Shown here piece by piece: positions 8,243 through 62,760 of a DNA stretch of 64,000 nucleotides; position 1 is the first letter of the stretch; every line of letters begins with the position of its first letter. Origin of the DNA: Octopus bimaculoides. Lineage: Eukaryota. The position numbers and the translations under genes were made by a program. The stretch spans positions 8,613,880-8,677,879 of the forward strand of contig NC_068989.1 of assembly GCF_001194135.2 (NCBI RefSeq), written 5' to 3'. The notes under the pieces were generated by a model. That model did not search any database and was not told the origin of the DNA. It saw nothing but the letters and a program-made list of their open reading frames with translations.

Positions 8243-8690
8243 TACATGGGGCATCCCAGAATGTTGAGACATTTTCAGGAGAGACATTTATAACTGCAAA
8301 GAAATACAAATGTCTAATCTCCTTCGAAGTAGAATCCTCTTACTTCAAAGCACATATTTTAGAACTCCATCCACTACTCCATGACCTCATGGAAGTTCGC
8401 CAAAATGAAGGTGTTCAGAACCCTTGTTACAGACTCCTTCAGGATTTCTTCCAGCTTCGGGAACAACCAAATTGCAGAGGAAGCAAGGGATTGTAGAGCG
8501 GATGGTGAGGGACAATTTGGAATTGTGGACTGCTGCTTTTTACAAAGAAATCTCCCCCTGAAATCCCTCAAAGCCTCCACAAAGTACTCTTTGTTAATCG
8601 TCTGACTAAAGGGAAACTAGAGGCTGCAGATAATACATTTGCTGTTGAAAAACAGGGGATTATCTTGATTTGCCTGCTCTCTTATGCCAG
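8243..8690 (-). pseudogene. mariner (Tc1/mariner DD34D) transposase C-terminal relic with probable element end near 8243
   Basis: Minus-strand translation gives QTINKEYFVEALRDFRGRF...IWLFPKLEEILKESVTRVLNTFILANFHEVME*WMEF*NMCFEVRGFYFEGD* (stop at 8314-8316). This matches mariner motifs GQTVNKEYY, (YSPDLAP)xDFWLFPKLK and the terminal GDYFEGD. It has deletions and stops. Confidence 0.85.
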
Positions 8691-9980: not shown

Positions 9981-11240
9981 CATTATTGCTTTCTTCTTTG
10001 TGTGGAAGTTGAGATAGTACAGATATAGTGCACGAGAAAAGCAATAGTATATAGAGTAAGACTGTGTATGGTTATTACTTGGCAAAGTTAAGGAGAAATT
10101 TAACATACATCAAACATCATTTTATAGTGTAAAAAATTGTAACCATCCAATTTAAATGTAAGATATAGGACCCTGTTAGTGTAATGATTGGTATTTTTTG
10201 CCCGGTCAATAAATGATACCCATAAAGAATTGAAAGGAAATGTTCGTTTTATTTCTAGAGACATCCATTTTCGAGTCGTTCTTTTGAATAAGTTTCAATT
10301 TAATGTTATCGGATGCGTATTGTGTATGTTTTCTTTAATGTAGAAATGTTTTATAAATTACACGATTTTCTCCCCATATCCAACAACTTCGACCCTATGA
10401 ATCTTTCAGTGTGATTTTAATTTTCATTTTAAGAACCATAAAAAATAAGCCCCATTTATTTTGAGTAGTTCTTTATATTCTCATTCTAAATTTCCAAATT
10501 AATGTTTTGAACGAAACAAAAGGGATTCCGCTGCGAGCATTTTCGAGAAAGCTTCCATCATTTAGAGCGTTAATTGAATTCAGGCTTCAATGAAGACGAA
10601 AGTGTGAAGGCGTGAAAAGCAATCACTTTGACTTACTAAAAAAAAAAAAAAAGAAGATTCCGTAATTGAAATGGGATTTCTCTGAAGAATTCACAGACGG
10701 GGATTGGCACCAGGTTATCAACTAATTTCTTATGTATAAAGGAGGAGAACACTTAAGTTAAAATAGTAAGCTGATTAATATCGCTAAGCTCTGATTACTA
10801 CATGCCTGATTAAACAGTTAACTGAAGGTGTCATTCTATGCAACGTTTTCATTAAAAATATTTTTCCTAAACCCTGGTTCCTACGTAATGATATTGGTCG
10901 ATGCTTTACATTTTTGGGGGGAGGGGGGGGGTTGAAGATCCAACTATTTTAACAAATAGATCTAATCACAAATCATTTGAATGCCTCAATTTAAAATATA
11001 CTTCAAGTGTACTTGCTTGTAAACATGCCATTAAGATTCCTTTGAATTACTATCTAAGAAGCAAGAGAAATAAAAATCAGAGTTGCAATGCCTCAGACAG
11101 AAGCCACATAAGCTAGCCCTTCTTGAAAGTACTTTGATAGTTAGGTAATAATAATAACATGTCACAAATGAATAACAGAAACAGATGTAGAGAAAGTTGC
11201 AATGTCTAATTCATCGCTACACTACCAAAATAGATCTTAT

Positions 11241-11436
11241 CATACAGTTCTATATTTAAGAGATGAGGAATTATGTACATTATTTATATTATTTACATTT
11301 GACGGATATTTGTCCTCATCTTATTTGTTGTTAACCACTACGCCATATTCCCGTGGACATATGGCGTAGTGGTTAAGAGCGCGGGCTACTAACCCCAAGA
11401 TTCCGAGTTCGATTCCAGGCAGTGACCTGAATAATA

Positions 11437-11467
<31 letters not shown>

Positions 11468-11608
11468 CATCGAAAAATACCTTAGGAATGAGAATCTAGG
11501 TTCGAAATTTCCCCAAGACATCTGATGAAGGCTGGAGGGTATATCAGCCGAAACGTTGTGTTAACAACAACCAAGATGAGAACAAATATCCTTCAAATAT
11601 AAATAATG
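11241..11608 (+). mobile_element. Fold-back tRNA-SINE with hammerhead ribozyme module (inverted tail + inverted head + full forward copy), 10-bp TSD
   Basis: 11241-11335 is the reverse complement of the element tail. 11331-11376 is a head-to-head palindrome. A box TGGCGTAGTGG at 11362, B box GAGTTCGATTCC at 11405, (AAT)n linker, hammerhead at 11517-11562. Flanked by TAGATCTTAT at 11231-11240 and 11609-11618. Confidence 0.9.
11517..11562 (+). ncRNA. Minimal type-I hammerhead ribozyme motif
   Basis: Helix I GACAU/GUGUU, core CUGAUGA (11522-11528), extra A, helix II GGCUG/CAGCC, GAAA (11550-11553), palindromic ACGU in place of helix III, putative cleavage triplet GUU. Confidence 0.7.
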
Positions 11609-11985
11609 TAGATCTTATTCCATCCAAAACGAGTTAGTTGCTTCTCCACATCTTACTAATGGTAGATTTTTAATTTCCTGTCTATAAGTTGTTGAAATAT
11701 TTATTAAATGTAGTTACCCTTGCATTTACACAATCTCTCTGGTGGGATAGGAACTATAAAACTCTCATGAGATATGTCAGTCTGCACTTTCAATACTACC
11801 TATCTAGTCTGAAGAATCAAATGTAGAAAAACAATATAATTTCGAAGATATTATATATTTCGTGATTCGGTATAAACTTCCAGCCATCGTACACTTTTCA
11901 AAATATCCGTCATAGTTTGTTGTTTATTCCAAGATCAAATGAATGGATGTAAATCAAAATTGTTTTCAATATTGTTCCAACCATC

Positions 11986-12205
11986 AGGGCGGCGATCTGG
12001 CCGAATCGCTAGCGCGCCGGGCAAAATGCTTAGCGGCCTTTCGTCCGGCTTTACGTATTTAATTCAAATCTTTCGAGACCAACTATGTCTTTCACCATTT
12101 TGGGGTCAATAAAATAAGTAACAGTTGAGCACTGGGGTTGATGTAACCGACTTACTCCCTCCCTCGAAATTAGCAGCCTTATGTTGAAATTCGAAAGCAA
12201 TATTA
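11986..12205 (+). mobile_element. tRNA-derived SINE family A
   Basis: ggcggcgatctggccgaatcgctagcgcgccgggcaaaatgcttagcgg...ggggtcaataaaataagtaacagttgagcactggggttgatgtaaccgact; homologous to 44813-45045. Confidence 0.85.
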
Positions 12206-13198
12206 TGGTAATCAAGGGTGTGCAGAATCGTATGAACGTCGGACAAAATGCCTTGCAGACATTTTCTGGCATTTACCATTTTTATTTCATATCCTACCGG
12301 AGTCAATTTTCCTTTCACTTCTCATAGCTCGATAAAAGAAAGTAGTAGTCTCATATTGGAGTCGATGTTGCCAATTGAACACCTCCCTTCAAAATCGTTG
12401 GTTTCGTACCTTAATTAGAAGCATTTATTATGTTAATTGGTGCGGCGGAAGGATAGATACAGTAGAATGTCAGACCAAGTAATTTTCGCATTTATTAACA
12501 ATAATTTGATGAAATACTACTTCAGAACTGGTAACGATATAAGTGACTAGATATATTCTCCATTTTTTTCTTTTTACCTATAAAAATCTATAACATACTA
12601 GCTGTTAACTAGTATGTATCTATCAATAATTATCTCAGATACCATCAAGCAGTACATCTGTGTGGCTGAAAGATTTATTGGGAAACTAAAGAAAGCACGC
12701 AAAGTTAGAAATTTACAAAACCTGTTCATTTATTTAATTTTAGTCAACGTGACTGGAACATTATTATTTTTGTATCTACCTGATTTAAGCGTGTGACATT
12801 TTGACAGTAAGATCGATCGGTCCGAACGATATAGTTTCATTTAATTTGTGGCTTGTGTGACTGGAATTCTCAGGACAGTGAAATGAATGGCTCAAATAGC
12901 GTAAATTACTTTTGTTATCTTTTTAGTTATCACGTGCCATGGGTTATGCAGAGGTGATAAGGGTTAGTATCATCCAAAGTGTGATAAAAGTCGGAATGTA
13001 TATTTTAGCATTGTTTTATTCTTCACGAACACCTTTGATTAAAAGATATGAAGAATCTTTACAGAAATTATTTGTAAAGTATGATAGAGCTTATATCTGT
13101 TATCCATCTGGATGCTTATGATGGAAAGCACTCAGAAGAACTTGGGACTATTTACGTAAATTATTCAAACATGTGATGAAAAAAGACGTTCCAACGAT

Positions 13199-13320
13199 TC
13201 CGAGATTGACATGACCTTTTATTCTTTCGAGTCAATAAAATAAATAGTAGCGGAGCACTAGTTTCAACGTTATCGACTTCGTTCTTCCAAAATTCCAGGA
13301 CTTGTGCATATTGCAGAGAG
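13199..13320 (+). mobile_element. SINE family A, 5'-truncated degenerate
   Basis: ccgagattgac...ttctttcgagtcaataaaataaatagtag...aaaattccaggacttgtgc matches the family A core and tail. Confidence 0.55.
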
Positions 13321-13733
13321 TTATTTTACATTCATTTATGCGCTATATATTATTCTTCTATTCTCATTCTAAGATCTGTATGTTAGACTATGTTAAACTC
13401 AAAAGCCCTAATTAGTCTGAAGCATCCTGGAGTCGCCACAGTAGAACCAAAGAACAGAGACGCTCTCCATTACGTTTTATAATTAAGCTTTAAAAATTTA
13501 TATTCTATGTTTCCTCATCTGTCATTCTTGGCCAGATTAAATTATTTTTATAATAAATTTTCTCTCTTCAGCATAGGTATAATTGTTTTATAATTAGAGT
13601 ATTCAGAGGGTAAATTATCTTGCTTAACTCTCTGACCAACCTGCTAATATCCTGTTGGAATGAATCAATATGCTAGATACTTTTGATAATGTATAGACAA
13701 CAGATTCTGGATTTCATCATTAACTGATGATAA

Positions 13734-13925
13734 GACGGCAAGCTGGTAGAAGCGTTAGCATGCCAGACAGAACTCTTACTGGCATTTCGTCTGTCTTAAC
13801 CTTCTAAGTTCAAATTCCACCGAGGTCGACTTTGCCCTTCATCCTTTCAGTGTTCATAAAATGAAGTACCAGTTGCACATTTGAGCCGCAAAATTTCTGG
13901 CTTTGTGGCTATAGCTGAAAGTACT
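13734..13925 (+). mobile_element. tRNA-derived SINE family A
   Basis: gacggcaagctggtagaagcgttagcatgcc...ttctaagttcaaattccaccgaggtcgactttgcccttcatcctttc...aagtaccagttg. Confidence 0.85.
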
Positions 13926-16355
13926 ATTAACTAATGATAGCGTAATATTTAATGTAAAAGAGGTAGAGTTATAACTGCTCGTCTCTGTATTTCTTTGTAT
14001 GAAATTTGTTGTATATTTAAGTAAGAATTTCTTGATCAACTATTGATCAAGCATAGATTTGGTTCTACATGACATTAAGTTGGTACATTGTAGCATAAAA
14101 AATGATTGCATTGTATTCTAGAGAAATCATTGCGACAATTTAAATGATTTCATTGCTCTATTATATAATATTTATTTTACTTATCAAAATATATGCAATT
14201 TTACTGAGATAGCAGAGATAGCAATGGCGCTGGACGGCTTTGTGTGTTACAATAGAATTCACATTAACTGACAAGGTTTTGCTTAAATTTGATATAACAA
14301 TTTATTTTCAAGATTTGTAAGAATCCTTTTAAGCTGACAGTTTTTTTTTCCTTTTCCTTTACAAAGTAATAACATATTTACTTCATTTTCATGTACAGAG
14401 AAATACATCATTTTAAAATTTTCAATTAAAATATTTTTAGAATCAAATCAAATATCTTGAAATTACTATTTTCGTTTTTCACCTCTCAAGGGTAAAGTGT
14501 CCATTATGAAAACGTTTGAATAAAGAATCCATTGCAAAATTCTTCATAAACCTTTCTATTGCCATATATTCTCTCTTTCGTTTTACATTTCTTTGCAAAA
14601 TTACTGACGGGGAAAGAATACAAGTTAGACTGTTCACTTGTGAGTGTTGATATGAAAAATAAGTTTAATTAGAAGTGATTCCAGTCAATTGATTTTTATT
14701 GAAGGTGGAGAATAAAACCTTGAAATAGAATAAAAGTAAATTAAGCAATTGACAACATGGTTCTCTTGAAATGTCAAGAAATGAAATATCTTAGAGAAAT
14801 CATATTGAAATTATAGTTTTATATCATTTTTGTTATTTCATTTCTTTATTACTTTCCTCGTTCATTTGTGATACAAGTGGAGCGACTTAAATATTTCCGA
14901 ATGTATAATTCTCTGTGTGATTGTTTATGCATATGCATCAACGCATACGTATATATGTGAGTTCTAATATTTGCCATTGCATAATATGGTGTATCTTATA
15001 TTCCTTTCATCCTCCTAGTTGTTGTGGTATATAGCTGGGTATATTCAGTTTTATATATTATTTCGTTCGGAACGAAAACAATACTGAACACGTCTTGTAG
15101 TCCCTAAGATTACACGACAAACTCCATTGGATATGTTCCTCTGTCAACTACATAACATTAAACCTGCAGATTATTGTGTTGGTCATATCTGAAGTCAGCT
15201 AGGTGGAATCTGTCAAAGCGTGTCAGTTGCTTACTCTCTGTGTTTATTAAGGGCGGTAAGCACTCCATAAAAAATCAGGCTCTATTTAGTATGTTTATTT
15301 TGATGTTATTACTGTACTAATGTGCTCATCTATAGGATGAAAGGCGGAGATATTGTATTTTGTTATGTATAATGGTGTTCCTTGATGTTGTATATATGCC
15401 TGGGGTTTCAAAATAGTTCTTCATACAGTGACTGTGAATGGGATGAGATTGAGGCATGCTGTTGTATCAAACTGTACCCGTCGCATAATTCTGTAGTCTT
15501 TTGTTCCAGTACTTTCATTCTATTGCATGCACGGTCTGTGTACAACCTATCATGTTGTACAGTGAGCTGATTTGTATTCTTTGTAGCTTATTGTGTGTTT
15601 TTGGAGAGACAATGGGCTAGAAAGCTCTAGTGTAACCCATGATCGATCTGATGGGTTTTTTCTGTTGGCCAAAACGTTAATATGAATGCTAAAAATTACT
15701 TCAGAAATGTTACATTTCATGAGAGTTATGTGAATCAGTTATCTTACTCGTATTTAAGGTTTTTCCCCATCTTCAATAATATCCAGTCGGCTGGAGTTAC
15801 TTCAAGTTTCATTTTTTTTTAAAGTCAACACACGGAATAGAATACCACAGAGATCCGTCTTCAAGCCTATTATTTTCAATCCATAACTAAACAGCCTTCT
15901 CAAACTCTGAAAAAAGCATACGACAGTCTTATACACAGATATCACCACAATGCCATACTCTTACCTTTATGCAAACACCGAGCGCTTGCATTCGTATTGA
16001 TTTTGAAGTCTTTAGTTGCATATTGAATATAACTAAGGTGTGGTGTACAAGATTGTTTTCCTTGATATGAACTGTATTTAAACAGTTAAAATAGACAACT
16101 TTGATGTAGCCCTTTTCTAGAATGTTGTCGGAATCTGTATTCATGAAATTGGCACAAGGTTGTCGTGGGATGCTTAAATATGTTGCACGACGTGGATGTT
16201 TATATGTCAAGTGTTAAGAAGTGGGTCGTTGTTCGAGATGACGTTGAATGTTTAGAAGGAAAAATGTGGAGAGCTAATGAATATATTGAGAAAGAACAAA
16301 ATATGTGAAAACATTGCATTTGCAAGATCTGACAGAAAATTACCGATCCAAGTCT

Positions 16356-16583
16356 TGCGAAACGAATTTAAAATGTTTCAAACGATGTTATTGTTAAGCA
16401 CATGTTGCGATGTGACGTTTGCGCAGTTGAATAAGTAAAGCAATGAGCATGTTTGGAATAGAAAAGAAAAAAAACATAGAGAAAATGATCAACGAAAAGA
16501 TGAAACACTGGAATACAGAAGTGATGGGAAGAAAGCAAAAACTTGGAAGAGTGAACATCAGACGGGGAATATTCTAAGATGAT
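16356..16583 (+). pseudogene. R4/Dong-like non-LTR retrotransposon reverse-transcriptase fragment
   Basis: Translation ...S*ISKAMSMFGIE...MKHWNTEVMGRKQKLGRVNIRRGIF*DD resembles the RT motif region PHSWI..C..FG....M..W.T.L....LG.V.I.RGIFQGD of R4/Dong-type RLE LINEs (recalled consensus). Confidence 0.65.
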
Positions 16584-17194
16584 GTCAAAGGAGTTATTGG
16601 GGAAAACGGAACTTTGAGTCACACTAGGTTTTTATGAATTGTAGGATAAACGGACTGCTATGGCTACAAGAAATGAGATATGCATGAAGCCCATAAGTGG
16701 GAAATTTTACCAAAATGTATGTGTACGAGATAGGTTGCAAGGCTTTGTCACAAGTGAATCTGATTTATATAAGCTGTAATTACGAATACTTAGTTATCTT
16801 TTATCTCCGTTAAATGTTTGTCCTCTTGTACTTAAGAGTTAGTCATTCATCTAGATTTCTGTTTTCCATATTGTTTCAAAGAGAGTTTTATTCTGGCTTT
16901 AATTGATATCCGCTGATATGTATTTATCTTTAATCTTTTACTTGTCTCAGTCACTGGACTGCAGCATGCTAGGGCACGGCCTTGAAGACATTCTTATTCA
17001 TTTATCTATTGTGAAACATATCAACCCTACTACACATTTTTTAAAATTTGGCACATATCATATTGATAAATTATGTCGAAACCTTATGTAACGAGGATGT
17101 AAACAAACCAAAACTAGTTGCCAAATGGTAGGCACAAATGCTTACCTACGCATACACATACATATAATGGACTGCCACACAGATTATGTCTGCC

Positions 17195-17280
17195 AAACTC
17201 ACAAGATATTGTAAAAGACACTTGCCCAAACAGTCGCGCAATGGTAGTGAACCCAAAACCATGTAGTTGCAAAGCATTCT
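17195..17280 (-). mobile_element. SINE family B fragment
   Basis: aaaagacacttgcccaaa...gcgcaatggtagtgaacccaaaaccatgtagttgcaaagc aligns with 60100-60170. Confidence 0.7.
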
Positions 17281-17999
17281 GTGTATTATTAATCATGCCA
17301 ATATTTAGTTGTGAGTGGCCTTTCTCGAGGTTTTCTCCTCGTGGTCTCGGGTTTGGTCTTCGTACGCAATGTGCATGGCTGATTCGTTGTGCACATAGTA
17401 CCAATAGAAGCAGCATTAAATTAAAATAGCCAACTATTTATCATACATACTTAAAATAGATCGTTGTAAGGCATATGTACCACGGTATTCGTCCCGCGAA
17501 AGCATATTTTGTGGACCCGTTCCGTTTCAAAACACCATATGTATTGGGGTGCAACGAAAATTGTACCAGCAATGGCTATCGAGAATGCCAGATGTATTTT
17601 GGCCACGTTGGACCGCTGGACCTTGTCAATGGTGTTTACTAAAAGCCTACCACATGCTTAAACAAGATTTGCCACCTACGATATAGAGAAAAATATGAAA
17701 AATATTCACTGATATTGCGAATAGCCCACTAACTGAATAAAAATCTGTTATTTGCAATAGAAACAGTATTAGATTATTATACTTAATGTAAATACATTAG
17801 AAGGCAGATTTACTGCAGGTATTTAATACTGATTCTATTGCATATAACTGATTTTTATTCAGTTGGGCGGTCATTTACAATATCAGTGGGTGTCTTTAAG
17901 GTTATATTATACATCAGAGGTGGTAGGTCCATAAGGGATGTCATCTCCGGATGAATACGCAGTAAGAAATATGCATGGCTGTGTATATATGTATGTATG

Positions 18000-18042
<43 letters not shown>

Positions 18043-18767
18043 GTGTATGTGTATGTGCATGTGTGTAACGTTTTTTTCCAAACAGCTTCCGTTTAACTAA
18101 TCCCCTAATTCCGCTCAAAGACATTGCTCTACTCGATAAAACACAGAAGACTCGTCCAATATGCTATGTTCATGGCTTGAACGTATTTGCACAATCAAGA
18201 TCAGAACATGTTATTTATTTTCTTTGTGTTACGAGGACCCAGGTGTTTTAGATTCCTTTCGGACCTTATTTATTAGCGTCAGTGGTTGTCTGCTTCGTTT
18301 TATTTTCTTCGCTGAAGATATTATATTTCTGTTTGTGATATCTAATTTCTTTGTGTATTTATTTTGTTAATCTGCGAACAATCACTAATTTATTTGAAAT
18401 TAGTGTTTCTTTTATTTTAGCTTCATTTTTTAATTTCTTTTATGCTATAAATTTAATACGTTGCTTTTATACTACTACTGTGTATTAAGACTAGTATAGC
18501 TGTTTAATATGTGTATAACAGTCCTTGGCTTATTTTTCTTTCTTTTTTTTGTTTTGTTTGATACATTGTTCTCTCATAATTTCTGTTTTATTGGCAACGA
18601 TGATTCTTTTTATTAAAGAAGTGGGCTTAAATTGTGGATGCACTTCATTTGTGATGCGTGTATCTCTATAAATGATACTAGTGTTGCTATGAAATGAGAT
18701 AGCTTTAACCGTTAATCAAAGCTGCGCTGAAGTTACAGAAACCAGAAGCTTAGTTTTAATTCTATTA

Positions 18768-18803
<36 letters not shown>

Positions 18804-18812
18804 TTCTCTCTT
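18768..18812. repeat. (CT)n microsatellite
   Basis: Near-pure CT run. Confidence 0.95.
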
Positions 18813-19390
18813 TCAGTATTGTAGTTAAAACTACAGAATAAAATTAAACTTCATCCTCAAACTGATATTAAGATTTATACTTTAATCTTAATTTGTTTTC
18901 TTTTATAAAATTAATGTCCGTGATTTTGATAACATTTTCAATAAATTGACCAGGCAATATAAAATTTCATGTGAAAATCAATGATAAAATATTTAAAAAT
19001 ATTTCCAATTGAAGCAACCTGCAAGTGTCGTGAAAGTTCAACAAACAACAGATTCTTAATTAAATAAATATTCTGTTTACAGTTAGCAAATACAAGTTAA
19101 CTCACAATTAGGCCATAGACTTTATGAATTTCCGGTGATTATTACACTTACAATATACAAAATTAGCAATATCGATGCATAACGTTTTTTGCTTTTAATG
19201 AATAATTGTGTTCGGCTAGAGAATATTTATTCGTGCTAAACTATCTTAATTACATATTTCACCTATTAAACAGCAGAGTTCCGTTTCTTGGCGCTAAAAT
19301 AATGTAAAAACGGTTATTTGACAAACGAAATAAAGTTTGAAATAAATTTTCCTTTAAAGCGTTGTTTCTCGCTTTTCAAGCCTTATGTCA

Positions 19391-19434
19391 CTGGAGAGTT
19401 TTATATTTTGATGGCAAAATATAAAACTCTCCAG
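19391..19434. repeat. Perfect 20-bp inverted repeat (hairpin, 4-nt loop)
   Basis: CTGGAGAGTTTTATATTTTG-atgg-CAAAATATAAAACTCTCCAG. Confidence 0.95.
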
Positions 19435-20206
19435 ATGATAAAGTGTTGAGGCTTTATATTCAGTCATAACCATAAATACATTTCATTTGAAGAACAACTA
19501 AGAAGTTTAAAGTGTTTGTCGTGTCAACTTTTGCTCTCTGTTGTTGATTCGTCTAAATGTTTGCAGTGGGAGCTATGTGATTAGCAAGTGCGTATTAAAA
19601 AGATGTCTATTTACTTCCTTATTTGTTTTAAGTTCTTGGGAAAGGATCAATTTGTCAAGCAGGCATTTAGTTCTTCCCTGAAGTATGCTTTAATTTTCTG
19701 CCTTAATTAAGACCTGAATAAACTTCTACTCGGTCATTTTGACTTGCTCGCACTTCGACCATATTTCTTCAAACAAAGTATTTTTAGAAAACAAAAGGCT
19801 AATTAGATGATGCGACTTAGATATACAAAAAAGACAACATCGTTACAGCTGGATTACCTTTGTTCTGTTTACTCACGACTGACCAAGGAGTAAACATCCT
19901 TTCTGAAGTTCGTTAAGTTCAGTTTATATTTTAAATTGAAGCATTTTTTTTCTTTTTTTCAAGATTCGGTGCTATAGATTTCTTAGTTCTAGATTCAGTA
20001 TTACGCTTTTGGTAAGGGTGGGTCAGAAAGGAAGAAAGAAAGGCAAATCTTGTTGTATGTTGTCTTTGTAGGAATGAACATAACTTTCAGAATTTAAACT
20101 CTTATTTTTTTAAAAATAAAATTGTTATTGCAAATCTGTACATGCCGTATCTTTGATACTACGCAGCCTCAACTGAATGACAGGGTTGTAATTTAAGGAG
20201 TTGATG

Positions 20207-20460
20207 TATGCCCACGGGCATATGGCGTAGTGGTTAAGAGCGCGGGATACTAACTCCAAGATTCTGAGTTCGATTCCAAGCAGTGACCTGAATAATAATA
20301 ATAATAATAATAATAACATCGAAAAATACCTTAGGAATGATAACCCAGGTTCGAAATTTCCCCAAGACACCTGATGAAGGCTGGTGGGTATATCAGCCGA
20401 AACGTTGTGTTAACAACAAACAAGATGAGGACAAATATCCGTCAAATGTAAATAATGTAT
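20207..20460 (+). mobile_element. tRNA-SINE with intact hammerhead ribozyme module
   Basis: Short palindrome TATGCCC-ac-GGGCATA at the 5' end, A box TGGCGTAGTGG (20223), B box GAGTTCGATTCC (20267), (AAT)n linker, hammerhead 20366-20411, tail ending aaataatgta. Highly similar to 11355-11610. Confidence 0.92.
20366..20411 (+). ncRNA. Minimal type-I hammerhead ribozyme motif (best-preserved copy)
   Basis: Helix I GACAC (20366-20370) / GUGUU (20407-20411), CUGAUGA (20371-20377), extra A (20378), helix II GGCUG (20379-20383) / CAGCC (20394-20398), GAAA (20399-20402), then CG-U-U. Confidence 0.75.
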
Positions 20461-25440: not shown

Positions 25441-25470
25441 CTTACAGAACGACAACAACAACAATAATAA

Positions 25471-25680
25471 TCCTTACTACTATAGGCAAAAGGTCTGAAA
25501 TTTGAGGAGAAGGAGCAAGTCGATTACATCGACCCCATTGCTTGACTGGTACTTATTCTATCGGCCCTGAAAAGATGAAAGACAAAGTCAACCACGACGG
25601 AATTTGAAATCAGAATGTAAAGACGTACGAAATGCCACCAAGCATTTGTCCGGCACTCTAAAGATTCTGCCAGCTCGCCA
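25471..25680 (-). mobile_element. tRNA-derived SINE family A
   Basis: caagtcgattacatcgacccc...tggtacttattctatcggccctgaaaagatgaaagacaaagtcaacc..cggaatttgaaatcagaatg...attctgccagctcgcc. Confidence 0.9.
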
Positions 25681-29410: not shown

Positions 29411-29749
29411 AAATATATATATACATATTATGGCTATTTCTTTCCACCATAGTATTTTTAAAATATTTTCTAAACATTATAAATTTCTAATTTTAATGAA
29501 TGTCATTCATTTGTTACCGATTCGCGAAGTAGTTATTCGAATATCCCAGATAGTGGTGGTGTTGGCGCTGGTAGTTTGGTGATGAGTGTTCGGGTGGTTG
29601 CGTTGGTGAAGTAAGCAGTGGTTACAGTAGTCTTAGTGATGTTGACATCACGTGGTATTATTGGTGTTTGGGGTAGTAATGTTAGTGACAATGTAAGTAG
29701 CTGTTGTAGTGTTGTTAGTTGTGGTGGTGCTTTAAAATGTTGTAATATT

Positions 29750-29846
29750 TCAAATTTTGACACAAGGCCAGTAATTTGCAAGTAGGTGTAACGCGATTAC
29801 ATTGACCTCAGTAATCAACTGGTACTTATTCTATCGACCCCGAAAC
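29750..29846 (-). mobile_element. SINE family A 3' half
   Basis: tcaaattttgacacaaggccagtaattt...gattacattgacctcagtaatcaactggtacttattctatcgaccccgaaa. Confidence 0.8.
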
Positions 29847-38478: not shown

Positions 38479-38775
38479 ATGGGCAGTCTTGTACTCTCAA
38501 TCTAAATGCCTTGAAAATCCGAAAATATAACGGTATTATGAGCTTGTAGGCGCGAGGTAGACATGTTGATGTATTGATTGGATAATTATCATCAAACAGA
38601 CAATTATTACGATTATGTACGTTTACAAGTATTTGTAAAATGGGAAGTACTACTTGTATTACAAAGTAATTTAACATTGTAATTACTAATGGAACATAAA
38701 AAGCGTTTTTACAGGACGGAGAGCTAAACTTAATCCAATTTTCGATAAAAAAATTTCGTGGACATTGTTATTTGC
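38479..38775. repeat. Left arm of a perfect 297-bp inverted duplication
   Basis: Read base by base, it equals the reverse complement of 40467-40763. The ORF track shows an identical 66-aa translation on opposite strands. Confidence 0.95.
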
Positions 38776-40466: not shown

Positions 40467-40763
40467 GCAAATAACAATGTCCACGAAATTTTTTTATCGA
40501 AAATTGGATTAAGTTTAGCTCTCCGTCCTGTAAAAACGCTTTTTATGTTCCATTAGTAATTACAATGTTAAATTACTTTGTAATACAAGTAGTACTTCCC
40601 ATTTTACAAATACTTGTAAACGTACATAATCGTAATAATTGTCTGTTTGATGATAATTATCCAATCAATACATCAACATGTCTACCTCGCGCCTACAAGC
40701 TCATAATACCGTTATATTTTCGGATTTTCAAGGCATTTAGATTGAGAGTACAAGACTGCCCAT
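40467..40763. repeat. Right arm of a perfect 297-bp inverted duplication
   Basis: See 38479-38775. Confidence 0.95.
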
Positions 40764-41092
40764 CACATATTTTATGTAATTTCATTTCTAAATTAATCAT
40801 TATATGAATTTCTATCTCATTATAATGCAGCGGCGTATAGTAGCCGTTTCTCAGACAGAATAGAATATGTACGGAGATCTAATACTTCAAAGCATAAAAA
40901 TAGGCAATGGAAAATATTTTCTGTTATGGAAAAGGAGTTTATTGTTTAAATGAGAGAAGAAGCGTCTATAAAGAGTGTTTTGATTTAATTTCCTTTCACA
41001 CACCAGTGGACTACAAATACTACAGACTCAGACTTTTACTGAAATTCAATTTTTAGTCGTGTTTCTAGTAAAAACTATTCAATTGCCGAGTG

Positions 41093-44812: not shown

Positions 44813-45243
44813 AAGGCGGCGAGCTGGCAGAAACGTTAGCACGCCGGGCGAAATGTTTATCGGTATTTCGTCTGCCGTTACGTTCTGAGTTCGAATTCCG
44901 CCGAGGTCGACTTTGCCTTTCATCCTTTCTGGGTCGATAAATTAAGTACCAGTTATGCACTGGCGTCGATATAATCGACTCAATCCGTTTGTCTATCCTT
45001 GTTTGTCCTCTCTGTGTGTAACCCCTTGTGGGCATTAAAGAAATAAGAAACGTTAGCACGCCGGTGCGAAATGTCTAGCGGTATTTCGTCTGTCTTTACG
45101 TTCTGAGTTCAAATTCCGCCGAGGTCGACTTTGCTTTTCATCCTTTCGGGATCGATAAATTAAGTACCAGTTGTGTACTGGATCGATCTTATCGACTGGC
45201 CCCTTCCCCCAAAATTTCAGGCCTCGTGCCTAGAGTAGAAAAG
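44813..45243 (+). mobile_element. Dimeric SINE family A (two head-to-tail units with different tails) flanked by a 16-bp direct repeat
   Basis: Unit 1 (about 44813-45045) and unit 2 (about 45046-45243) share head and core. AATATTTACGACCTAT occurs at 44797-44812 and 45244-45259. Confidence 0.9.
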
Positions 45244-46681: not shown

Positions 46682-47175
46682 AAACACCAACGCAAGGAAT
46701 ACTGGTGGATTATTCCCATCAAAACGTCTGTTCGATGTAAAGATAAGAGGCCGGATATTGTTGTTTGGGACAGAGGGGCAAATATATGTACCATCATAGA
46801 GGTTAGCTGCTCTACAGATATAAATATCTCTTTGAAGATCAAAGAAAAAGAAGGTATCTATGGACAACTGCTTCGAGCCCTCCAGCTTCTATATCCAGAC
46901 TATGAATTCATATTTATACCAATAATAATTGCAGCACAAGGTTTTGTTAGTAAATGCTTAAAGGAGAATCTGGATAAACTGGGATTTTCAGAAAGAGAAA
47001 TTGACTGGATGATTCGTACAAGTGCAATCTGTAAGTGGAACAGTAAAGATATGCAAGACTTTAATCAAGTTCCAAATGTGAATTTGTTGTGTTAACTTTA
47101 TCCCAAAGATGGAGCCTTGTATCTTTGTTGGAAACCGGCTGCCTCCTCAGTGGAAGATTTATAATAAGAAAAAAA
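46682..47175 (+). pseudogene. 3' end of an RLE-type non-LTR retrotransposon (R4/Dong/NeSL-like): restriction-like endonuclease domain + 3' UTR
   Basis: Open frame KHQRKEYWWIIPIKTSVRCKDKRPDIVVWDRGANICTIIEVSCSTDINISLKIKEKEGIYGQLLRALQLLYPDYEFIFIPIIIAAQGFVSKCLKENLDKLGF. After a frameshift: VQSVSGTVKICKTLIKFQM* (stop 47079-47081). It has the RPD..E..K PD-(D/E)xK signature. Confidence 0.85.
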
Positions 47176-54249: not shown

Positions 54250-54450
54250 GAACGCTGAGCTAACGCGCCGGTAAACATGCATAGCAGTATTTCTTCTGAC
54301 CTAACGTTCTGAGTTCAAATTCCGCCGAAGCTGACTTTGCCGTTCATCTCTTCGGGGTTTGTAAAATAAGTACCAGTTGAGTACTGGGGTCGATGTGATT
54401 GATGTAACCCTTCCCCGAAATTACTGGCCTTGTGCAAAAATTTGAAACTA
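54250..54450 (+). mobile_element. tRNA-derived SINE family A
   Basis: aacgttctgagttcaaattccgccgaagctgactttgccgttcatctcttcgggg...aagtaccagttgagtactggggtcgatg...ggccttgtgcaaaaatttgaaac. Confidence 0.85.
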
Positions 54451-54919
54451 ATATTACTCTGTCTACTTTTCTCAATTTCTTTCTATATCTCTATCCGTTT
54501 CTCTCTTTTTCAAATATTTTCACAAATACATTTACACACACGTCTAATTCTGACATTTATTTACATCAAACTTTTATACCATTGAACACATAGTGCAATA
54601 AATGGTATTTTGCAGAATATAGACCTTCATGACATTTACTTCAATTCATATAATGATGAATTCTTTTGGTGATGATTTTTATCGTACAATCACAATAATA
54701 ATCAGCTTCGCTTTACAATGCAATCTATGTCAATGTTAAATTCGATACGAGAGTCGTCATGAAGGATTAGCTAAGTTAAAAAGTTTCTGTCCAGAGTGTA
54801 CAATAACTAGCTATACCTGCTTACCAATAATGGTGATGTCCGCTCCTCTAAACAATCAATATACAATGAACCGATCCAGCAACGGACACAAACACGCCCC
54901 CCCCAATACACACACAGAC

Positions 54920-60190: not shown

Positions 60191-62204
60191 ATGGATAGAG
60201 AAATAGGTATAGATAGCAAATCAGATTAACAGATTATCAGACACACACAGACACATACATATACATAAATGTTGGCCAACATTTTGAGCTAGAAGGTGTG
60301 GTTCTTGGGTATGTTGGACACAATACGGGTATTTAGAAGGGTAGAGACGAATGAATCCCAAATGCTTGAGTGACGGGGGAAGGACACCAAATATCTCCGA
60401 GGAAAAGAAGCCGTTGTAGTGACGTAAAAAACGTTAGAAAGGAAACTGTAAGACCGAATGACATCATGTCAATTGATGCGATCAAGATGCACGCTCGTAT
60501 GTGTGTGTGTGTGTTTGTGTGGATAAATAGATGAGTGTGTAGGAAGTTCAACGTCTCAATTGTGAAATTAAGATTCTCTAGTTAATCCCAACTGAGTTTC
60601 ATACAGGGTCAGTAATTCATGGCAGATGATTTCTACTTTTCTTTCCCTGAAGGTCAGTCTTTGAACGTCCAAAGAAGCAGCCAACGTATAGAATACTCTT
60701 AAGTAAGTACATTTATTCATAGCAGTATGTGCCCGTGACATTGGTTGCCAAATAACTGTATCATTGTAGACATCTATAAAATTGTATACATTCAGATGAA
60801 TAACCTTGTAAAAACATCAACCATCAAGTAATAACACCCAAGTTATTTTTTTAAATTTCTACCTGTGACTTTGTGTTCTGATGCAGCTTTTCCACGGCTT
60901 TAGTAAGTCTCAGGTCTGATATTTTATGTAGATTTACATTCAGTGCTTGTGATTATTTTCTTCCAGCATATTCAGCCATATTGCATGATGCTTCAAATGT
61001 ATTTTTTCCTTGTAGATGTAAAACCAAAATTATTTAAGAACTTTCTGAAAAAAGGAATTTTTCCTTTTTTATAACAGGGATGGTGTTTCCTTTTATTTTC
61101 TGATATACAGTCGGTTAGTTAGATGCACAGTTTAAGCTAATGGCGATTCCAGTTAATAGCAGACATTTTTGCTAATAGAATTTTTCGTTCAAGGATTCTA
61201 TTTCTGCTTCAGTATTAATAATTTTCGCTCAATAGTTCGAAGTTTAGATATACCGTATACATTATACAGTATTTCCATAAAATAGGATGAGGTGAGATTA
61301 ATGCTCACCTTACATTTTGTGATAGTTTCTAAATGTCCAATTCCAACGCATCGACTGTTAACATTTTCGTAGAGTTATCGCTAGGGTGGCACAAAGTAAT
61401 TCAGGCATTCTGAGAAATTGTTTTCAAGCAATAACTGCTCGTTTTACACAAAAATGCATGGCATCTAGTTTTAACGTCTATACTATTCAATATCAAAGAG
61501 ATTATTTTTGCCCACACTCTTCGCCAAAACGGTTTTGTTCCTTAATGTGAATTTAGATAATTTTGAAAACTGTCCACAAATCCAATTTTTGATAAGTTTT
61601 AGCTCTCTATATTCCATAATTATCTCTGGTGGGTCATACGTTATAAAGAGATACGCATTATCATTGCTGTTCGTAAATTTTTTTATGTTTAGTCTGTCAT
61701 TGCTTAGCTTTGTTGATAGTTTACACTCGCGTGTAATTCATCCGAGAAATTCATTAATCACAAAAGTCGGTAAATAAAGGTTCTCAGACGTTTTGGTAGT
61801 ATAGGAATGAAAACCAATTTAAAAGAAAATAAACTAGAATGCCAACACTGGATATTGATTATAACAGAGTGGATTTAAACAAAAAACATCATGTCGTCAT
61901 ATGAGACTGTATAATAGAGATGACTGGTGCCTGACACAAAGATTCTTACACCTGAGGGGAGCGGCTGGTATTTTGTAACGCACGTTGGGATTCCCTTTAC
62001 GAATAATGTAGTTGAATCTTCTCGACTGTGGTTTAAATAAGATTCGAATTAACACGCCGTTAATGAGTTTGTGAGTATATACATACGTATATATAAAATG
62101 TTTTGATGACTCTTGTTTAAATTAGTCTCTCGAAATAAGATAGAAAAAATAGAAATACACTATTAAGGGATATATCTATTATTATTATTATTATTATGGC
62201 CGGG

Positions 62205-62404
62205 TTGAAGGCAGCGAGCTGGCAGAATCGTTAGCTCCTGAGTGAATCGCTTAGCGGTGTTTGTCCAAGTTCACGTTTTCGCCGAGGTCGATTTTGCCTT
62301 TCATCCTTTCGGGGCCGATAAAATAAATACCAGTTGATCACTGTAGTCGATGTAACCAATTTCCCCATGTCCTGAAATTGTTGGCCTTGTGCCAAAAATT
62401 TGAA
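62205..62404 (+). mobile_element. tRNA-derived SINE family A
   Basis: aaggcagcgagctggcagaatcgttagc...gccgaggtcgattttgcctttcatcctttcggggccgataaaataaataccag...ggccttgtgccaaaaatttgaaatt. Confidence 0.9.
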
Positions 62405-62760
62405 ATTATTATTATGACCGGGTTCGAACCCAGGCCACAGCAAAGTCTACCCGCCACACTTCTCGGTCAATCATCACTACCTCAATGTCCTTGATACATT
62501 CTAGACCAGAATCTGCAATCAAGTTGTTGATGTGAATGCGACGGCGTATTTCTCTTCTTATATCGCTATGAAGTTGGTTCCACAAGATTAATTTGGATGC
62601 TTCTAGTACAGGGTGATGCACACAGTGACCAGATAATCGCACCTATCTTTGCCTGACCTTCTTAACTTTCAGCAGATCTCCATAAATGCATTTATTTGTC
62701 ATATGTTGCTACCATTTCACATTTAGTGTCATTCGTAACATCCTTGTTTAATATCCACTT
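62405..62760 (-). pseudogene. RTE-clade LINE 3' fragment with (TAA)n tail
   Basis: Minus strand: Y*TRMLRMTLNVKW*QHMTNKCIYGDL..KVRQR*VRLSGHCVHHPVLEASKLILWNQLHS....IHINNLIADSGLECIKDIEVVMIDREVWR. This matches the RTE C-terminal pattern YTRMLR.ALNVSW..H.TN..LYG.L...IR.RRL.LAGHC.RH....L.LW....Y.D.L..D.G......M.DR..W. Confidence 0.8.

Follow-up and report, generated by a model that had tools for sequence, protein, structure and literature searches.

The 64-kb stretch of Octopus bimaculoides DNA analyzed here (the window) carries a short repeat in which a tRNA-like head with putative RNA polymerase III (Pol III) promoter boxes is joined to a 3' module built around a minimal hammerhead ribozyme motif. 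With moderate confidence, we read this element as a tRNA-derived short interspersed element (SINE) that would be mobilized in trans by the reverse transcriptase (RT)/GIY-YIG protein of a Penelope-like element (PLE), with a 3' module that would itself come from a PLE. Mobilization by a PLE is supported because the copies have two discrete 3' ends and include an inverted partial copy enclosed in a single target-site duplication, both of which are published PLE hallmarks. An earlier sequence-only reading of the window had suggested the use of PLE machinery, a proposal now strengthened by the two 3' ends, ~41 nt apart, and by the inverted copy within one 10-bp duplication.

Five copies were found in ~140 kb of DNA, four of them (A to D) in the window and one (E) in a fetched 76-kb O. 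bimaculoides locus (L003; chromosome CM046612.1). The window itself has ~33% G+C (67% A+T), many microsatellites, and 11 assembly gaps. A BLAST search of the window with copy B returned matches at 11346-11610, at 1732-1822 on the minus strand, and to an inverted fragment at 11282-11361, and an nhmmer scan of the window with the element detected, beyond copies A to D, only AAT microsatellites. The two full copies and one decayed copy with a common layout that the sequence-only reading had described are all present, the decayed one (copy C) spanning 1689-~1836; copy D, which adjoins copy A head to head, had been missed. The aligned columns of copies A and B show 94.3% identity (230/244), and the two differ further by 12 nt in microsatellite length, given which their earlier description as near-identical was slightly generous.

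The unit is dispersed and non-coding, and measures 244 to 256 nt (~290 nt with a long-form tail). It starts with a tRNA-like head (75 nt), runs through an (AAT)n linker and a central region (49 nt) to the hammerhead motif (46 nt), and closes with a tail (48 nt). This layout, or its 3' part, is common to five copies at five loci with unrelated flanks. The 5' ends of copies A, B, and D all correspond to tRNA position +1 or -2, and the AC at 20214-20215 may represent a 2-nt leader of copy B. Copy C starts ~25 nt upstream of the ribozyme, and in copy D, head positions 1 to ~22 are fused to the post-ribozyme tail via a GT(G)GTTAA microhomology. Because head and tail co-occur at loci with unrelated flanks, also in the internally deleted copy D, the sequences support a short composite retroposon whose parts moved together. 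All five copies are solitary, the two full ones lying 8.6 kb apart, and five to six copies per 140 kb suggest an abundant family. A scrambled fragment of the element was also observed in L003 (68155-68249, minus strand), beside an assembly gap and an extended (AAT)n tract. [quoted passage not shown]

The head is recognizable mainly by its promoter boxes. An exact A box paired with a one-mismatch B box (38 to 52 nt spacing allowed) occurs in copies A and B only, with 0 such pairs in 40 simulations, and the spacing of 44 nt in both copies is exactly the tRNA value. There is no TTTT run in copy A or copy B, and a Pol III transcript could therefore cross the whole unit. The tRNA features surviving in the head are the promoter boxes, a D-arm-like stem, and a T-loop; SINE heads usually keep only such partial tRNA features. 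By eye, the head is reminiscent of a tRNA-Ser(GCU) in its D arm and anticodon loop.

The hammerhead of the 3' module was searched for with a descriptor that required helix I and its return strand, CUGANGA, helix II, GAAA, a U opposite A15.1, and any cleavage nucleotide except G. Within the window it matched only the motifs of copies A and B (Table 1), compared with a chance expectation of 0.01 per window (100 first-order Markov simulations); since the two copies come from one ancestor, this figure counts for one real motif rather than two independent ones. The catalytic core, helices I and II, and the palindrome substituting for helix III, as proposed from the letters, were recovered. Helix I has 5 bp, including one G.U pair in copy B and two in copy A. 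Helix II of copy A has 6 bp plus an A.A mismatch and is followed by GAAA and then by the palindrome ACGU, to which helix III is reduced (within AACGUU) in copies A, B, and C. The predicted cut lies after U11557 in copy A and after U20406 in copy B, that is, after the U of GAAACGUU. The core (CUGANGA...GAAA with a non-G H17) is intact in copies A, B, and E, the last of which has a helix II of 6 bp plus an A.A mismatch and a palindrome changed from ACGUU to AUGCU; in copy C, the core has mutated from CUGAUGA to CCGAUGA (U4 to C). When the motif is folded in isolation, the structure with helices I and II is at most 0.6 kcal/mol above the minimum free energy.

In the minimal hammerheads of PLE pseudo-long terminal repeats (pseudo-LTRs), helix II measures 7 to 8 bp and helix I 4 to 5 bp, a nucleotide is left unpaired 5' of stem II, and helix III is missing; the weak in vitro activity of these hammerheads is limited to dimers (Cervera and de la Pena, PMC4209133). 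All four published structural traits are carried by the predicted octopus motif, which has an intact core, 6 to 8 bp in helix II, 5 bp in helix I, the unpaired nucleotide on the 5' side of stem II, and a helix III that is down to a palindrome. The extra A, a single unpaired nucleotide directly after A9, had been explained as a tolerated hammerhead variant; it is present, but it is a listed trait of PLE minimal hammerheads rather than an oddity (PMC4209133).

The 3' ends of the copies are of two kinds. In the short form, copies A and B stop at an identical base (...AAATAATGTA), and copy E was also counted here after a candidate decayed tail was rejected because its alignment was no better than that of shuffled sequence (p = 0.41). 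In the long form, copies C and D extend 41 to 43 nt further and stop together (...ATATAGAACTGTAT), with extensions that are 95% identical to each other. No copy has poly(A) or a microsatellite at its 3' terminus. A perfect 10-bp direct repeat, TAGATCTTAT, encloses the inverted copy D together with the forward copy A (chance of ~4e-4 for two 30-nt flanks, by our own arithmetic); the right-hand repeat overlaps the terminal TA of the element, so the duplication measures 8 to 10 bp. The insertion flanks have 57 to 73% A+T, which does not stand out in this window of 67% A+T. In both copies A and B, the element's own 5' end is found inverted directly upstream (11346-11361 and 20207-20222, respectively) around a 2-nt center, GT in the former and AC in the latter, a pattern that suggests either a fixed geometry of two-cDNA joining or snap-back synthesis.

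The tail part of copy D begins 3 to 8 nt from the predicted cut, and we considered whether copy D could be a record of ribozyme-cleaved RNA. This was rejected as unproven: the junction falls within the GT(G)GTTAA microhomology, the extra G of the head is retained, and a template switch ahead of the RNA end would explain the junction equally well. Direct near-repeats were observed in the A-box region (GTGGTTAA, 11370-11377) and just after the predicted cut (GTGTTAA, 11558-11564), with equivalents in copy B at 20231-20238 and 20407-20413, and the internal deletion of copy D spans the interval from the A-box repeat to the post-cut repeat.

Table 1. Copies of the hammerhead SINE, their parts, and associated insertion scars (window coordinates unless L003 is given)
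Feature	Position	Strand	Evidence or description
Copy A, full length, short-form 3' end	11355-11610	+	BLAST, nhmmer, alignment
Copy A, head	11355-11429	+	
Copy A, A box TGGCGTAGTGG	11362-11372	+	Exact match to TRGCNNAGTGG
Copy A, B box AGTTCGATTCC	11406-11416	+	1 mismatch to GGTTCGANNCC; 44 nt from A box
Copy A, (AAT/GAT)n linker	11430-11467	+	
Copy A, central region	11468-11516	+	
Copy A, minimal type-I hammerhead motif	11517-11562	+	Helix I GACAU/GUGUU, core CUGAUGA, one unpaired A
Copy A, post-ribozyme tail	11563-11610	+	
Copy B, full length, short-form 3' end	20216-20459	+	BLAST, nhmmer, alignment
Copy B, A box	20223-20233	+	
Copy B, B box	20267-20277	+	
Copy B, (AAT)n linker	20291-20316	+	
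Copy B, central region	20317-20365	+	
Copy B, minimal type-I hammerhead motif	20366-20411	+	Helix I GACAC/GUGUU, helix II 8 bp
Copy B, tail	20412-20459	+	
Inverted 5'-end stub of the element (tatgccc), 7-8 nt	20207-20213	-	Directly upstream of copy B
Copy C, 5'-truncated, long-form 3' end with extension	1689-~1836	-	BLAST, nhmmer
Copy D, inverted, internally deleted, long-form 3' end with ~41-nt extension	11242-11352	-	
Copy E, 5'-truncated in linker, short-form end	L003 71130-71311	-	Found in fetched O. bimaculoides DNA
Target-site duplication, left, TAGATCTTAT	11231-11240		Flanks D+A composite
Target-site duplication, right, TAGATCTTAT	11609-11618		First two bases overlap the element's terminal TA

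Insertions of PLEs often have an inverted 5'-truncated copy upstream and an optional 30- to 40-bp tail at one end (Craig et al. 2021, PMC8557442). In vitro, a purified PLE protein cleaves both strands of AT-rich DNA and initiates reverse transcription within the RNA, at two neighboring positions downstream of the hammerhead, which accounts for the tail; hammerhead cleavage in that study was protein-assisted and was dispensable for insertion (Frangieh et al. 2024, PMC11167929). The octopus element is similar in that the apparent end points of reverse transcription are found downstream of the cut site, at a distance of tens of nucleotides, in that a tail is optional, and in that inverted copy D adjoins copy A upstream within one duplication, while copy B has only the 7- to 8-nt stub. 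It differs from PLEs in that the motif resides in a ~250-nt unit with a tRNA-like Pol III head and no RT/GIY-YIG ORF nearby and in that its tail measures 41 to 43 nt rather than the published 30 to 40 bp.

The same scars bear on the possibility that the element is an ordinary tRNA-SINE dependent on a long interspersed element (LINE) of the CR1, RTE, or R4/Dong type, with a hammerhead-like motif that is an old PLE passenger or a chance occurrence without a role in mobilization. The window is full of LINEs and contains a second, far commoner tRNA-SINE, many LINE families are active in Octopus vulgaris (PMC13282606), no PLE partner was found in the window or L003, and 5'-truncated copies such as C and E, as well as target duplications, are typical of LINE-type insertion too. 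However, the 3' terminus is neither A-rich nor a microsatellite, there are two sharp alternative ends ~41 nt apart, an inverted partial copy lies within the same duplication, and the 3' module has no other match in 140 kb of octopus DNA. A chance origin of the motif is likewise at odds with its expectation of 0.01 per window and with its four PLE-specific traits. We therefore consider dependence on a LINE unlikely.

Less likely again is that the copies are solo pseudo-LTRs, i.e., remnants of an autonomous PLE after severe 5' truncation, with incidental tRNA-like sequence in the terminal region of that PLE. The scars of PLE type would follow directly from such an origin, and published PLE copies are mostly truncated, with dispersed single minimal hammerheads being common (PMC4209133). 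In contrast to what random truncation would give, copies A, B, and D start at the same nucleotide (tRNA +1 or -2), which argues for a defined RNA 5' end; the exact tRNA box spacing and the lack of TTTT fit a Pol III unit of ~245 to 290 nt, and a coding remnant is absent upstream of every copy. The candidate label of retrozyme given by the sequence-only reading is very improbable: metazoan non-LTR retrozymes are tandem repeats in which the hammerhead cuts each unit for ligation into small circular RNAs, and although they too have a type-I hammerhead in a short non-coding repeat and were recently proposed to be PLE dependents, the five octopus copies are solitary (the full ones 8.6 kb apart), so that a single cut per transcript releases no unit and unit-length or circular RNA is not expected, invertebrate retrozymes have canonical, efficient monomer-cleaving hammerheads rather than this helix-III-less minimal form, and a Pol III head is no retrozyme feature.

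Several observations weigh against PLE mobilization of a tRNA-SINE. The head, although its A and B boxes are 44 nt apart, is not called as a tRNA by ARAGORN (default or relaxed) or by the Rfam tRNA model (gathering score in the window, E<=10 in 11200-11700), so the tRNA-like character claimed earlier is upheld for the boxes, the D arm, and the T-loop and not for the whole head, and it is the boxes alone that suggest Pol III use. The Rfam hammerhead models (Hammerhead_1, Hammerhead_3, HH9, HH10, and Hammerhead_II) have no match in the window at the gathering score or in 11200-11700 at E<=10. Such a failure to match, also of Hammerhead_1, which had been put forward earlier as a check, is what a motif with a helix III of only ACGU should give. 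Inactivating changes are present in two of the four copies with a ribozyme (U4 to C in copy C and U16.1 to C in copy E), as would be expected of neutrally decaying insertions. Across these four copies, too few to yield covariation, helix changes are one-sided (C-G to U.G; G.U to A-U) or pair-breaking, and the three copies that are intact or nearly so have one-sided changes only. By nearest-neighbor energy, a domain-swapped double hammerhead (-29.3 kcal/mol) is not favored over a pair of monomers (-32.2 kcal/mol), and thermodynamics alone therefore gives no argument for dimers.

The scars have their own weak points. The pattern of two ends consists of three loci versus two, for five copies in all, and around copy B a clean target duplication is lacking. 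Between arms A and D, 6/51 tail positions differ and the subfamily variants are not the same, which implies an origin from two RNAs or two successive events, and the D+A composite could thus have been made in two steps. Lastly, a six-frame ORF listing of the window, Pfam searches of ten candidate ORFs, and an ORF listing of L003 revealed no RT or GIY-YIG ORF, the search having limited sensitivity for decayed copies. No other sequence in the window or L003 shares the 3' module, so the match between SINE and partner is missing; the autonomous PLE with the same module that the sequence-only reading had suggested looking for was not found in this DNA.

A partner of this kind is nevertheless plausible in this host, since the curated O. 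vulgaris annotation includes 30 recently active Penelope families, together with 893 "unclassified SINE" families, and makes no mention of ribozymes (PMC13282606). Scans of metagenomes, viruses, and prokaryote genomes with the ribozyme and tail patterns gave zero matches, as did a protein search that used the open frame antisense to the element and a literature search with element sequence strings.

Sequence anatomy and insertion scars are what we observed, and from them we infer every step of the following cycle for a PLE-mobilized SINE. Pol III would start at the A/B-box promoter of the head and read through the linker and the TTTT-free 3' module into the flank. The PLE protein would bind around and downstream of the hammerhead and nick both strands of an AT-rich target. 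Reverse transcription would start inside the RNA at ...AAUGUA or ...ACUGUAU, ~41 nt apart, yielding short-form and tailed copies, and the cDNA would either reach the RNA 5' end or halt early, as in copies C and E. Priming at the second nick could attach a partial copy in inverted, head-to-head orientation, as in copy D, with one 8- to 10-bp duplication around the whole. The hammerhead motif would be an inheritance from the PLE end and, lacking helix III, may cleave only as a dimer via the ACGU palindrome or with the help of protein. Insertion probably does not require the hammerhead. With the head on one side of the cut site and the priming sites on the other, full-length copies would have to stem from uncleaved RNA, a geometry that fits the published dispensability of cleavage. 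An internal start of reverse transcription guided by RNA structure would spare the SINE a poly(A) tail or a defined RNA 3' end.

The architecture had been thought undescribed, but the pairing of a Pol III promoter with a type-I hammerhead has been known since 1998-2000 from the schistosome SINE-like elements SMalpha (Schistosoma mansoni) and Sjalpha (S. japonicum) (PMC6765202, PMC8490949). These elements are likewise short, non-coding, and dispersed or repeated and have the same overall architecture as the octopus element. In contrast, the SMalpha hammerhead is canonical and fast, with a loop-loop tertiary contact, whereas that of the octopus is of the minimal, helix-III-less PLE type; SMalpha is often tandem, whereas the octopus copies are solitary; and the octopus element bears a PLE-type tail and inversion scars. 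On the grounds of its host and its minimal ribozyme, it is an analogue of SMalpha rather than a member. Metazoan retrozymes, argued in a 2026 preprint to be PLE dependents, resemble the octopus element in being non-autonomous and hammerhead bearing and differ from it in having tandem units, circular RNA, and no Pol III head.

Pol III promoters derived from small RNAs are also found on the ends of a retroelement class other than LINEs, in the TRIMp3 elements Cassandra, Helenus, and Ajax (PMC10886601). TRIMp3 elements depend on LTR retrotransposons and, unlike the octopus element, have LTRs, a primer-binding site, and a polypurine tract. Reviews of SINEs and of small-RNA-headed elements include LINE-dependent SINEs and LTR-dependent TRIMp3 elements only (PMC10886601), and we found no PLE-dependent SINE in the literature, the open-access scope of the corpus making this weak evidence. 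In all, what is new is a twist on known elements, i.e., the joining of a Pol III head to a PLE-type minimal ribozyme and PLE scars, and not a new kind of element.

Within octopuses, Ohshima and Okada reportedly described tRNA-derived SINEs in 1994. Those SINEs and the unclassified SINEs of O. vulgaris have the host genus and a tRNA-derived head in common with the element described here, and it is very likely that the hammerhead SINE is among the 893 unclassified O. vulgaris families. The searchable literature makes no mention of a ribozyme or a PLE tail in octopus SINE families.

The window contains other repeats. The second tRNA-derived SINE, with at least 10 copies (62150-62440, 44813-44974, 45114-45230, 54320-54456, 25463-25602, 29743-29845, 12086-12207, and 13803-13875 among them), ends in an (ATT)n tail and is embedded in (ATT)n microsatellites. 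Its translation is 83% identical to [quoted passage not shown] which is probably a SINE-derived gene model. L003 is the genomic locus reached through this protein. A 137-amino-acid open frame at 46682-47092 on the plus strand (KRPDIVVWD...) has a weak Pfam restriction-endonuclease match (E = 0.048) and is 70% identical to two unnamed database proteins. It resembles the C-terminal restriction-like endonuclease found in LINEs of the R2, R4/Dong, or Hero type; there is no RT upstream. Inverted copies of ~290 bp with identical translations lie 1.7 kb apart at 38480-38767 (minus strand) and 40475-40804 (plus strand); they may represent a DNA transposon's terminal inverted repeats or else an artifact of assembly. 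An open frame at 8377-8616 on the minus strand (LFPKLEEILKE...) resembles by eye the C-terminal part of a mariner-type transposase and has no Pfam match at E<=1.

By definition, SINEs are parasites of LINEs, and small-RNA-headed dependents of LTR retrotransposons were named only in 2024. Tentatively, the octopus element may represent the first recognized class of SINE with a PLE rather than a LINE as its partner, its Pol III head exploiting the internal start of reverse transcription used by PLEs. If the partner is instead a LINE, the element is an ordinary SINE with a fossil ribozyme. If it is a PLE, Pol III-driven parasitism would extend to a third class of eukaryotic retroelements, and PLE-partnered SINEs could account for part of the unclassified octopus SINE pool. 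The 250-nt unit would be a natural minimal substrate for learning how PLE proteins pick internal start sites and what the ever-present PLE hammerhead is for, as the cut site here separates the promoter from the priming region, and it may aid in sorting the hundreds of unclassified cephalopod SINE families.

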